A DNA stretch of 64,000 nucleotides from Podarcis liolepis. Its lineage: Eukaryota. The translations under genes were made by a program, and so were the position numbers. Shown here piece after piece: positions 55,562 through 62,741 of the stretch. How positions within the stretch are numbered: the first letter of the stretch is position 1; each line of letters begins with the position of its first letter. The notes under the pieces are model-generated. The model was not told where the DNA came from. It searched no databases and saw only the letters and a list, made by a program, of their open reading frames with translations. Location of the stretch: the NCBI GenBank assembly GCA_965112155.1, contig OZ218100.1, one strand, 5' to 3'.

Positions 55562-55787
55562 ATGGGTCAGCTGTGTACAAAGTGTGTCCAGTTGCTTTGT
55601 GACTTGGCTCTCTCAGTAAAAACACTGTCTTTGGGTCTGGTGCAGGATATTCAGGAGTGCTTGGGTCAGATCCATGAGTGCCCCTGTCTGAAGCGGAAAA
55701 ACTTTAAAACAAAGCAGCTATACAAGCCTGCCCTTCAGACCCAGGAAGAGGAGATTGCTCAGGAGTTTCTGCAGCAGATTGAAAGAG
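55562..55787 (+). CDS. Vac8-like coding exon 1 (MGQLCTKC...EEEIAQEFLQQIER)
   Basis: ATC ATG G Kozak context; donor G|GTGAGA; 226 nt, phase 1. Confidence 0.85.
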
Positions 55788-58700
55788 GTGAGAAGTTTCT
55801 GTTATGAAGGTGGGGCAGCCAAAGTTGGAGAGATGTTTACTTGAGCTCGGTTGCTTTGTTTAAGATCATGCAGTTCAGTGATTCTATAAAGTGAATGACA
55901 GAGAGCTGTTTATGCTTCTGCTCTTAAGAGCAATGAAGGGAGAATGGGGGAACCAGTATTTCACCAGCACCAAATATTCAGACAAAGCAGTGGATCCCAG
56001 TTCCAGGCTGATTGATTAATTTACTCTCATTCAGCATTTGAATTCCCAGTTCTACAAAAGGCATCATAGCAAGGGGTAGACCTGTTAGCCTCTTGCATAA
56101 AAGCAACAAGAAACATTGTGGCATCTTCAAAGACTAACAAACACTTTTGCTACAAGCACGAGCACTTTCCTAAGCCAACACTGAAATACTCTCTGTAAAA
56201 ACCTATTAGGTATTAGAGGATTGGATTTGAATTTATTATTTGAAAACAGAAAGACGTCAAATGGAATGCTGTCCACTTCTTCCAACTCTTAAGTGCTCCC
56301 ATCTTTTGTTTTCATCCTTGATAATCAAGGAAATAGCATGCCAAATCTGGTTTGCTAAATACAGTAACAGAAATCCAAGTTTGGAATGTCCCAACTACTC
56401 TCACAAACTGGCATATATAGCAACTTTCTTCCTCACATGAGGTTTGGACTGCAAAAACGAATGGGGGGGGGATTAATAGTTTTTGCGGTCATTTGTTCAG
56501 CTCTATCTAGTATGCTAATTTTAAATGAGAGAATATTCCTACATGGAAGTTTGTCTCTCTTGTGTTTTATCTGTTGCTTTAAATTCTGTGCATTTGGACT
56601 CTTCAGGTATTTAACTTCTTCTGACACAATTCAGACTCTGTTATTATCACATCTTTCTTAAGGTTTTGAAATGTCACCACTTGGCAAGGTCTCCCTGGAG
56701 GCTCTGAGGACCTTGGCGTTTTCAGAGAACCCTGGCTTGCAAAAGTCTGCTGCTCTCTATTACTTGAACATAAATCATCAAAACTGTAAGATCCATTCCA
56801 TACTCTCTTTTTTGAAAATTTGTAGAAACCTGGAGAAGCAAAACAATTTATCCCAAACATAGCTGAGTTGTGCCCAAGGCAGTCTTATTGGTTCCCTAGA
56901 ATGTGTGAATTGGGTCTAGCCCCTTCTAATGCAAGTTCTGTGGATATTTACTTGGAGCTCAGATAATGTGGCAGTAACTTTTGTTACTAGTCTCCCATTT
57001 TATTATTTTATAGAGGTGGGCGAGTGCTAGCTGGCTTTTTACTCATATGAGAGGTTGGCAGAAGAGGGGCTAGTAAAAATAAGTAATACAGGTTTAGTTT
57101 TCATGTGAGTTTGCACAGGCAGCTGAAAGGAGGGCTACAAGGTATTTTGAAAAGCAAAGCAGGCCATCTAGGTGTTGCTCTAAAAGCATCAACTGTTTGA
57201 AGATGTAAGGGAAAAGTGTTCCAGAAGAGCTTTTTACAATCAGCATTTCATCTCATTCTTGCAGTGAACATCCAGCTGCCTCGAGAGCATCTGGAAATAT
57301 ACTATGCTTTGTTGAAGTCTAATGACTTGGAGGTTCAGCAGATTTCATCGTCGTCCCTTGTGAATTTCTTACTGGAAGGAAATGGTGAGTAAATGCCCAA
57401 GATACCATAGCCTTAAGTCTCCATCAGCATCTGCTGTGATCTTAGGAACTACCACTGTCTAGTTGCCCTGGTATTTTATTTGAAGGGCAAGATATAAATT
57501 CCTATACTAAAAAGTGATAATTAGTAGAATGGATGTTTGCCCTGATAAAATGTGTGGGGTTTTTTTTTTTGGGGGGGGGGGGAGCATTCATTCAGAGGAT
57601 AGGTTTTGCTTACTTCTCGTACCAAAAGGGTGAGAAATCATTTATTCCGGTGTAAGATGTACTGATATTGTGTGCTGATGGCAATCCTTTTCTCTCTCCA
57701 GTATATAGCTGAATTAAAGGCACTTTAAAAATAACATTTACTCCTGCTTTTACTGACAAACAGTAACCAAGGATCATGTCGTCCAAATGGATCTAATTGA
57801 GCCAATTCTGGAACTGCTTGAGTCTGAAGATGCCACGGTCCAGTGTAATTCCTGTGCCTGCATAATGACACTAGCTGTCACAGGTGAGGAGTGTGCCCAA
57901 AGCATAGCGCAATAATCAGGTCCAGGGACAATGTCACATCCACACCTTGTGATTGGGAGGTAATGATGTGCCTTATCGTTATATAAATTCTGAATCAAGA
58001 AGAGCTGAATTCTGCGAGCAGAGTGGATTATTCACACTGGTATGCTATAACTAGTCGTGGCCAGTGTAGTGGGGCAGAGCTTGTGGAGGCACACTTCTGA
58101 CACCAGTTTGACTGCAGTTTACCTGGATGGCTCTGGGTGGTGACATGCTTGGTGCTTCACAGACGCACAAGTGGAGCCAATGCAGTCCTCCAGGATTGCC
58201 TAAGAACTGCCTAGTCACTGGCCCCATACTGTGCAATAAATATAAAGTTGGCCTTGGAGTCCTGGGTTCAAATCTTAATAAATGATGAAGTGTACTTTCT
58301 AAAGTCAGGTGACCCATAGCAATAAGCCTCTTCACAAAAACCTGATGGTAAACTCTTAACATTATTCCTTCTGCCACTAGGCACCCAGGACCCCCAACTC
58401 ATATGCTGCAACTGTTTTGTGCTGTCCACTCTCTGTTCTTCAAAGTGTGCCTGGAGGAACATGGATACTTCTTCCTCCAAAGACACCTCGTTGATTTCTA
58501 TTTTGCCCTGTTGTTTTGCCAGATGTCAGCCATGAAGCCATCGCAGCAGCAGGAGGAGTGGTACCCTTACTGGCCCTTTCTAAATCCTACGATCCAAGAG
58601 TCCAACAAAATGCAGTTGGAGCAATTTTCAACCTCACACAATCAGGTATTAGGCTGCAGAGGATTTATTTCAATGGGCCAAGTGCATTGACACAGAAATT

Positions 58701-62094: not shown

Positions 62095-62129
<35 letters not shown>

Positions 62130-62741
62130 TCTAATCCAGTGGTTATCTAATCCAGAGGCTGCAGTCAACCACTTGCGCCTAGCAGCTGATTTTGAACAAC
62201 CACAATCCCAACCAAAGTTACAGAAACACAACTCTCTGTACCCTTTCTATCAATTTCAGTCCCCTGATTCTGAAGAGAATTCTTTCCAGCAGTGCCTTTC
62301 TACAAACATTTTGCATTGCTCAAACATCCTATTGGTCTATCTTTCCCCCTTTCTTTTATGCCATTGGCCAGAACACCGATCCAACCCTCTTGTGCAGTTT
62401 GGTTTTCATCTTCTTTTGACTTTTCATTAAAATGAGAAGTTTAACTTCTATACTATCATAACATAAGATTGCCTGATCTGTGAAGTCCAGCTGACTTGAT
62501 TGAGTCAGTCTAGAGGAGGCCCCTTTTTCTCACAAATCCTTTTCTCCAAAGCAGCTTCTATTGATCTGCACACATGACCTTGAGCAACCTTCTCATTTTC
62601 CAAACAGAGAGTGGTCAGACCAGCATCGTTGCTTTGCAGATCCCGTCCCACCTGCTCCCTCTCCTGGCATCTAACAAGAAAGACACTCAGCACAATTCCA
62701 TCATTCTTCTCCGGATTTTATCCCAGCACCCAGACAACCAG
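55562..62741 (+). CDS. Vac8-like (vacuolar protein 8-like) armadillo-repeat protein, 3'-partial, 367 aa in window
   Basis: join(55562..55787,56663..56785,57265..57384,57764..57883,58523..58645,58925..59007,60098..60223,61194..61239,62608..62741) = 1101 nt with no stops, GT-AG introns and consistent phases. Colinear with recalled yeast Vac8, e.g. LEALRTLAFSENPGLQKSAAL vs [21 protein letters not shown], and [29 protein letters not shown] vs [29 protein letters not shown]. Confidence 0.9.
56663..56785 (+). CDS. Vac8-like coding exon 2 (ARM1)
   Basis: TTTCTTAAG| acceptor, T|GTAAGA donor, 123 nt, phase 1-1. Confidence 0.88.
57265..57384 (+). CDS. Vac8-like coding exon 3 (ARM2)
   Basis: TTCTTGCAG| acceptor, G|GTGAGT donor, 120 nt; LLKSNDLEVQQISSSSLVNF. 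Confidence 0.88.
57764..57883 (+). CDS. Vac8-like coding exon 4 (ARM3)
   Basis: ACAG| acceptor, G|GTGAGG donor, 120 nt; [27 protein letters not shown]. Confidence 0.88.
58523..58645 (+). CDS. Vac8-like coding exon 5 (ARM4)
   Basis: TTTTGCCAG| acceptor, G|GTATTA donor, 123 nt; GGVVPLLALSKSYDPRVQQNAVGAIFNLTQS. Confidence 0.92.
58925..59007 (+). CDS. Vac8-like coding exon 6
   Basis: CCCTTGCAG| acceptor, CAG|GTAAAC donor, 83 nt, phase 1-0; [19 protein letters not shown]. Confidence 0.9.
60098..60223 (+). CDS. Vac8-like coding exon 7
   Basis: TTCTTCAG| acceptor, AAG|GTAAAG donor, 126 nt; [13 protein letters not shown]...LLSSSVDK. Confidence 0.9.
60684..60866. mobile_element. Palindromic MITE (PIF/Harbinger-like)
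   Basis: TAA|GGCTGCATACAC ... GTGTATGCACC|TTA termini with inner CTGTAGTTTA / TAAACTACAG arms. Confidence 0.65.
61194..61239 (+). CDS. Vac8-like coding exon 8
   Basis: CTAG| acceptor, G|GTAAGT donor, 46 nt, phase 0-1; [15 protein letters not shown]. Confidence 0.88.
61913..61946. repeat. (CA)17 microsatellite
   Basis: Read directly. Confidence 0.95.
61945..62098. mobile_element. Non-autonomous DNA transposon between inverted microsatellites
   Basis: CAGCTTTTTCTGGGGGG ... CCCCCCGGAAAAATGCACTG imperfect TIRs. Confidence 0.65.
62097..62128. repeat. (TG)16 microsatellite
   Basis: Read directly. Confidence 0.95.
62608..62741 (+). CDS. Vac8-like coding exon 9
   Basis: TTTTCCAAACAG| acceptor, CAG|GTACAC donor, 134 nt, phase 1-0; LLPLLAS...IILLRILSQHPDNQ. 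Confidence 0.85.

Follow-up and report, generated by a model that had tools for sequence, protein, structure and literature searches.

Positions 55562 to 62741 of a 64,000-nucleotide stretch of DNA from Podarcis liolepis (GenBank assembly GCA_965112155.1, contig OZ218100.1; the whole stretch is referred to below as the window) probably hold, on the plus strand, the 5' two-thirds (exons 1 to 9, codons 1-367 of about 576) of the lacertid 'vacuolar protein 8-like' gene, the one vertebrate member of the opisthokont Vac8 family that was found. We put the probability of this reading at roughly 0.8. In yeast, nucleus-vacuole junctions, the inheritance of the vacuole and the site of autophagosome formation all have Vac8 as their hub. 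Reviews describe it as having no obvious mammalian ortholog (PMC4951168). The gene is already in public annotation and is unstudied; what is new is its placement and its contrast with ARMC3, an animal protein with armadillo (ARM) repeats that resemble those of Vac8 and with a reported role in autophagy.

The gene model consists of nine open exon blocks whose borders were read base by base. Their lengths of 226, 123, 120, 120, 123, 83, 126, 46 and 134 nucleotides (nt) add up to 1101 nt, or 367 codons, free of stops and frameshifts, and five of them, at 120-126 nt, are each near one ARM repeat in size. Each of the eight introns has GT at its start and AG at its end, which makes 16 canonical splice sites; pyrimidine-rich tracts precede the acceptors, and the donors were judged good (AG/GTGAGA, CT/GTAAGA, TG/GTGAGT, AG/GTGAGG, AG/GTATTA, AG/GTAAAC, AG/GTAAAG, TG/GTAAGT and AG/GTACAC). 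The exon phases are compatible, with six split codons that read G, L, V, D, E and E. The nearest family member is a protein of 576 amino acids (aa) from Podarcis muralis (RefSeq LOC114594173, isoform X1; P0253 below). The nine exon translations correspond to its residues 1-367 with the same junctions and with 359 of 361 whole codons identical (99.4%), and the six P0253 residues left unmatched are exactly the six split codons, with the predicted amino acids. Such exon-by-exon agreement cannot be due to chance. The two differences are L24 for S and, in exon 9, K for R; identity for the Zootoca protein is 94.7%. An earlier reading of the window, made from its letters alone (the original prediction), had proposed nine plus-strand GT-AG exons with 367 stop-free codons; its count and coordinates were correct and equal the existing RefSeq model. 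Position 62741 is a splice donor and not a gene end, so the gene continues beyond the window, and a scan of 62742-64000 with family proteins found no further exon. The exons are as follows.

Exon 1, 55562..55787, plus strand: the ATG, the N-terminal helix, C5, C8, C40, C42, the LYKP motif and the H1 helix; ends in phase 1 at donor AG/GTGAGA; 74/75 identical to P0253 1-75.
Exon 2, 56663..56785, plus strand: ARM1 region 'LEALRTLAFSENPGLQKSAAL'; 40/40 identical to P0253 77-116.
Exon 3, 57265..57384, plus strand: one ARM repeat; 39/39 identical to P0253 118-156.
Exon 4, 57764..57883, plus strand: one ARM repeat, Pfam Arm E 4.6e-06; 39/39 identical to P0253 158-196.
Exon 5, 58523..58645, plus strand: one ARM repeat 'PLLALSKSYDPRVQQNAVGAIFNLTQS', Pfam Arm E 2e-07; 40/40 identical to P0253 198-237.
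Exon 6, 58925..59007, plus strand: first part of an ARM repeat, ends in phase 0, Pfam Arm E 3.7e-04; 27/27 identical to P0253 239-265.
Exon 7, 60098..60223, plus strand: 42/42 identical to P0253 266-307.
Exon 8, 61194..61239, plus strand: 46 nt, 15 aa, too short for a search of its own; 15/15 identical to P0253 308-322.
Exon 9, 62608..62741, plus strand: ends '...SQHPDNQ' at a GT donor; 43/44 identical to P0253 324-367.

Intron 8 carries two dinucleotide microsatellites at 61900-62130, visible as 'HTHTHT' and 'CVCVCV' runs in the translations of open reading frames (ORFs).

The exons were searched singly and not as a joined product, and the full-length work was done on two database proteins, P0253 and its coelacanth relative P0088. 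The latter was found with exon 5, whose matches in a library of 1.8 billion proteins are mostly multi-repeat ARM proteins, plus single-stretch matches at 70-87% identity. Two of the single-stretch matches are 580-aa proteins with the exon 5 sequence at residues 198-236, the same place as in the window model; P0088, named 'vacuolar protein 8-like', is one of the two. Among the sequences of solved structures the top match of P0088 is yeast Vac8, with 202 bits and residues 59-530 aligned to 13-481, compared with 68 bits for beta-catenin and 62 bits for importin-alpha. The stretches of Vac8 that the original prediction had quoted are all present in the yeast sequence of this alignment. The same protein comes first among natural solved proteins for exons 2, 4, 5 and 7 when each is searched alone, and the matched positions are colinear: Vac8 is the sole PDB match of exon 2 (E 0.003, chain residues 40-66) and of exon 7 (E 1.3e-04, chain residues 217-251), the best match of exon 4 (E 5.7e-12, chain residues 73-105) and the best natural match of exon 5 (chain residues 153-188).

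Profile and fold comparisons agree with the sequence searches. The profile-profile alignment of the vertebrate family with fungal Vac8 begins at the C40 cysteine motif and spans 495 columns at 30% identity, with a score of 488 (E 8.5e-65). With a control profile made from other ARM proteins, the score is 187 and the alignment, at 21% identity, spans 347 columns that do not include the N-terminal part. An AlphaFold model of P0253, built from a 77-sequence alignment, has a mean predicted local distance difference test score (pLDDT) of 89.7 and a predicted template modeling score (pTM) of 0.80. When this model was compared with the PDB using Foldseek, ranks 1-5 were all Vac8 chains, with target-normalised template modeling (TM) scores of 0.80-0.83 over 481-505 columns at 29% identity; the beta-catenin and importin-alpha families reached about 0.55-0.63. 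Pfam recognizes only ARM/HEAT-type domains in P0253. The earlier claim that the resemblance is more specific than a generic ARM consensus is borne out by the 202 bits against 68, by the TM scores and by the 495-column profile alignment. Taken as comparisons of sequences and of a predicted fold, these results support the assignment of the product to the Vac8 family specifically, beyond generic ARM likeness.

The vertebrate protein and yeast Vac8 (PDB 5XJG, 6KBM, 6KBN and 7YCJ) also share their order of parts: a cysteine cluster; the H1 helix with its 'LY.P.L' and 'E..A' motifs; and the ARM superhelix. They are similar in length, at about 576 aa for the vertebrate protein and about 550-580 aa for fungal Vac8 entries. 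They differ in that the vertebrate protein has at its N terminus an extra helix, about 37 residues long, that carries the invariant C5..C8 pair, in that the homologous cysteine cluster lies at residues 40-42 instead of adjoining Gly2 as in fungal Vac8, and in the long C-terminal helix that ends the vertebrate model. In the alignment, fungal N termini consist of MG and a cysteine cluster followed by 'LYEPLL' and 'ERE A'; invertebrate N termini have an extension ending in 'LEYCL' and then the cluster; and in vertebrate N termini an added stretch of some 37 residues, 'M(G)xxCxxC...IKECL', precedes 'CxCLK', 'LYKPxL' and 'ExxA'. An extension ahead of the cluster is therefore common to invertebrates ('LEYCL') and vertebrates ('IKECL'), and the cluster and the LYxPxL/ExxA motifs are common to fungi, invertebrates and vertebrates. 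This alignment makes the lizard C40 and C42 the counterparts of the fungal N-terminal cysteine cluster, a region for which palmitoylation is described in the yeast protein (PMC4951168). Conservation in a set of 41 vertebrate sequences is 100% for C5, C8 and C42 and 98% for C40.

The model of P0253 predicts a helix at residues 6-38 (pLDDT 67-79), disorder at 39-59, the H1 helix at 60-75 and the long C-terminal helix at 549-574. The N-terminal helix is weakly amphipathic, with a hydrophobic moment of 0.30-0.40. A four-cysteine zinc site made of C5/C8 and C40/C42 was considered and set aside, as the two pairs lie at opposite ends of this predicted 33-residue helix. In 82 alignment columns, fungi, invertebrates and vertebrates share one residue that reaches a frequency of 80% or more within every one of the three groups. 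These include N150, N185, N226, N274, N318 and N366, which sit on the third helices of successive repeats; in the H1 region, Y54, L58 and E62 are nearly invariant across the three groups. At 184 columns that are near-invariant in vertebrates, the Podarcis protein departs at 5, which is typical of the family, and that of the teleost Umbra at 57; nothing in these sequences suggests decay of the lizard copy.

The vertebrate family is widespread. A library search with P0088 gave 275 matches, and the best 120 of these come from sharks, rays, a chimaera, a sturgeon, the coelacanth, caecilians, frogs, a salamander, turtles, crocodilians, birds, the tuatara and many squamates; four entries that at first lacked names in this list proved to be from frogs, a skate and a salamander. 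Cluster look-ups add the bowfin, the bichir and one teleost (Umbra), and entries for more than 100 species carry the names 'vacuolar protein 8', 'vacuolar protein 8-like' or 'uncharacterized protein LOC...'. Birds, turtles, crocodilians, squamates and amphibians appear at 50-60% identity in the best 120 of the 275 matches, and mammals do not. All tetrapods are equally distant from the coelacanth query, and the absence of mammals from these 120 matches fits, and does not prove, a loss or strong divergence of the gene in mammals. The original prediction that the gene was kept in reptiles proved too narrow, since every jawed-vertebrate class except mammals is present among the matches listed. In the species sampled it is a single gene. 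The teleost protein (P0142, Umbra pygmaea) is shorter, at 516 aa, with neither the N-terminal part nor an ARM1 region; in teleosts the gene may thus be in decay or its model may be wrong.

The models of P. muralis LOC114594173, chicken LOC421690 and the Xenopus 'vacuolar protein 8' in RefSeq and UniProt represent this same gene and are automated predictions. As had been anticipated, the label 'vacuolar protein 8-like' is therefore already in use, for example for chicken LOC421690 (PMC5148799), and the statement that the gene has seen no functional work likewise agrees with our literature search, which found no functional paper on a vertebrate copy and nothing for LOC114594173 or Xenopus vac8. 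The sole paper found that names a vertebrate copy contains it in an expression table, in which the chicken gene has a low RNA-seq value of 0.56-0.82 in the pituitary (PMC5148799).

The library matches also include a scallop 'vacuolar protein 8-like' protein (XP_021367750). Its 120 best matches come from molluscs, a brachiopod, an annelid, a nemertean, hemichordates, echinoderms, amphioxus and sponges, and then from fungal Vac8, which the invertebrate proteins match at about 346-365 bits and 40-43% identity. These invertebrate proteins are slowly evolving and have the same size and architecture as the vertebrate ones, whereas the vertebrate clade is 27-32% identical to both the invertebrate and the fungal proteins, and the scallop and coelacanth proteins match each other at 242 bits. 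Most of the invertebrate proteins shown begin with MD or ME, that is, without Gly2. No vertebrate protein is among the scallop protein's 120 best matches, so no second, slowly evolving vertebrate copy is seen and the vertebrate family is the divergent one. Arthropods, nematodes and cnidarians are also absent from these 120 matches, which fits, and does not prove, a loss of the family in those groups. Such an absence from common invertebrate models, if real, would help to explain why Vac8 is seen as fungal.

The relationships among these proteins were examined in a tree of 62 sequences (22 vertebrate, 19 invertebrate, 11 fungal and 10 other ARM proteins), computed with IQ-TREE under LG+C20 with a quick search and with the Shimodaira-Hasegawa-like approximate likelihood ratio test (SH-aLRT) for support. 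Library matches of suitable length were checked by Pfam and cluster names; apart from entries without a name, these came from protists or algae and combined ARM repeats with kinase, BTB or F-box domains, and no ARMC3 was among them. The topology is fungi plus (invertebrates plus vertebrates), with support of 100 for the whole Vac8-family clade, 98 for fungal Vac8 and 96 for the metazoan clade, and with the other ARM proteins on one side. The grouping with fungal Vac8 on which the original prediction depended is thus recovered, relative to protist and algal outgroups. Within vertebrates the gene tree matches the species tree, as is expected of a single orthologous gene.

Several observations weigh against this reading of the gene. 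The outgroups in the tree are protist and algal ARM proteins, not ARMC3, ODAD2, SPAG6, beta-catenin or importin-alpha. The vertebrate stem branch is 1.24 changes per site long, several times any other internal branch, and the free tree puts vertebrates as sister to all invertebrates and not to amphioxus, a placement that could be long-branch attraction or old paralogy; forcing vertebrates and amphioxus together costs 5.8 log-likelihood units (p-AU, from the approximately unbiased test, 0.117), so that chordate monophyly is not rejected. The invertebrate proteins score higher with fungal Vac8 than the scallop protein does with that of the coelacanth (346-365 bits against 242), and the function may therefore have shifted. 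Identity between the vertebrate family and fungal Vac8 is only 29-30%. Searched singly, exons 1 and 9 have no PDB match, designed ARM proteins are all that exon 3 finds, and the match of exon 6, which includes Vac8 at chain residues 195-216, is of a generic ARM kind; half of the exons thus show a likeness specific to Vac8, and the others a generic one or none. At the N terminus, Gly2 is present in only 68% of the vertebrate sequences (sharks begin with ME, and some others with MA or MD; the window encodes MGQLCT) and stands about 37 residues from the homologous cysteine cluster, which no longer adjoins the N terminus. Because Gly2 is not conserved, N-myristoylation is probably not a family feature in vertebrates. 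About 209 of the roughly 576 codons fall beyond the window, so the last part of this copy is unseen, and apart from the low chicken pituitary value no data on expression, localisation or acylation were found. The core of the original prediction, a Vac8-family gene that is annotated and unstudied, was right, whereas parts of its wording were overstated, in addition to the restriction to reptiles: 'close' is too strong for a Vac8-family protein with 29-30% identity and a stem of 1.24, when the invertebrate proteins reach 40-43%, and 'intact' holds for 367 of about 576 codons, the rest being outside the window.

An ordinary ARM protein of another family (ARMC3-, catenin- or importin-like), with a likeness to Vac8 that reflects the shared ARM consensus, would account for the designed or generic matches of exons 3 and 6 and for the library search with exon 5, in which the summed score places the true family below many multi-repeat ARM proteins that are unrelated to it. 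It would also be in keeping with the naming of ARMC3 as the mammalian ortholog of Vac8 by Lei et al. 2021, as cited in PMC9735501, and likewise in a 2026 bioRxiv preprint. We nevertheless regard this explanation as very improbable: Vac8 scores three times as high as every other natural ARM protein of solved structure, the two sequences align colinearly from end to end with the non-ARM N terminus included, and the control profile reaches 187 where the fungal Vac8 profile reaches 488. ARMC3 carries, after its ARM repeats, a C-terminal papain-like domain that is not in Vac8 (PMC10318531), whereas P0253, at 576 aa, has ARM/HEAT-type matches only and no domain of this type by Pfam. A Bayesian study recovered vac8p and armc3 as separate monophyletic clades and detected relatives of armc3 outside animals (PMC3141441). 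The family described here is set apart from ARMC3 by this domain content and literature, not by sequence comparison. That the copy is a pseudogene, in decay or unexpressed, whose first nine exons merely seem intact is just as improbable. The last third of the gene is outside the window, its start region is CpG-poor and the only expression value found for an ortholog is low (0.56-0.82 in chicken pituitary), but the 367 codons are without stop or frameshift, every one of the 16 splice sites is canonical, the differences from the P. muralis RefSeq protein amount to two residues, with Zootoca at 94.7% identity, and departures from near-invariant vertebrate columns (5/184) are no commoner than in other species.

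A different kind of alternative accepts descent from Vac8 and holds that the protein has had a new function since the vertebrate stem, with another membrane or other partners, and is no endolysosomal tether or autophagy scaffold; 'Vac8' would then denote ancestry and not the job of the protein. The length of the stem branch (1.24 changes per site) speaks for it, as does the Pfam Arm score, which is 80 bits in the lizard protein and 173 in that of the scallop. Vertebrate residues 1-38, with their invariant CxxC pair, share with invertebrates only the segment adjoining the cysteine cluster, the model ends in the long helix 549-574, and Nvj1 has no obvious mammalian ortholog (PMC4951168). On the other hand, the cysteine cluster, the H1 motifs and the groove asparagines are kept from fungi to lizards, and the fold superposes on Vac8 over about 500 columns. 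This explanation, which we consider possible though on the unlikely side, partly overlaps with membership in the Vac8 family as favored here, as it concerns partners and not the mode of action.

If the gene is a Vac8-family member, the conserved residues and the predicted fold suggest how its product may work. The vertebrate protein would be a peripheral membrane adaptor, held on the membrane by acylated cysteines either side of the N-terminal helix, with C5/C8 before it and C40/C42 after it. The concave face of the ARM superhelix, which bears the nearly invariant asparagines, would bind extended partner peptides, by analogy with the complexes of Vac8 with Nvj1, Atg13 and Vac17 that are the best structural matches of the P0253 model, and the protein would thereby tether or recruit its groove-bound partners. 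From residue conservation, the model and this analogy, we infer a role as a lipid-anchored adaptor with groove-bound partner peptides. Nvj1 and Vac17 are fungal proteins, and the long vertebrate stem branch suggests partners differing from those in yeast. A role of the vertebrate protein as a lysosome tether or in autophagy is speculation.

A bolder proposal is that this family, and not ARMC3, is the true animal ortholog of Vac8, retained in a range of animals that runs from sponges to birds and lizards, with separate losses in mammals and among the usual invertebrate models, and still a palmitoyl-anchored endolysosomal adaptor for contact sites or the autophagy-initiation complex. We think this rather unlikely as a whole. 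If true, it would explain the field's view of Vac8 as fungal and would point to a layer of lysosome biology that mammals lack or perform otherwise. The occurrence of the Vac8 architecture in many animal phyla raises the question of whether Vac8-type tethering is ancestral to opisthokont lysosomes, and of what replaced it in mammals. Since chicken and Xenopus both carry the gene, a knockout or localisation study is feasible.

The neighborhood of the gene in the window includes the following two features.

42875..46389, minus strand: BCLAF1 5' coding exons, comprising the start codon near 46374 and two large exons; Pfam THRAP3_BCLAF1 E 2.5e-29 and 6.1e-30.
51250..52750, no strand: CpG island; GC 0.54-0.66, CpG observed/expected 0.7-0.96.

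BCLAF1 (minus strand) and the Vac8-like gene (plus strand) are divergent. The head-to-head arrangement with BCLAF1 in the original prediction was right, as exon matches to the THRAP3/BCLAF1 family lie on the minus strand at 42875-45717, with the start codon near 46374. The CpG island probably serves BCLAF1 as its promoter. A distance of about 2.8 kb separates the edge of this island from the ATG of the Vac8-like gene, whose CpG-poor start region would, as a sequence feature, suit tissue-restricted expression.

Elsewhere in the window, an ORF at 13417-13749 on the minus strand matches Pfam Mito_fiss_reg (E 3.1e-19), and this domain match identifies an MTFR2-like mitochondrial fission regulator gene 3' of BCLAF1 on the same strand; the ORF at 11686-12075 on the minus strand has no Pfam match. 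A 112-aa ORF at 17829-18167 on the plus strand looks like a transposable-element fragment, and a run of 274 N occupies 33885-34158. Overlapping ORFs on both strands at 21730-22539 fall in a GC-richer stretch (GC 0.47 in 22001-24000), a possible second promoter island that could belong to the MTFR2-like gene.

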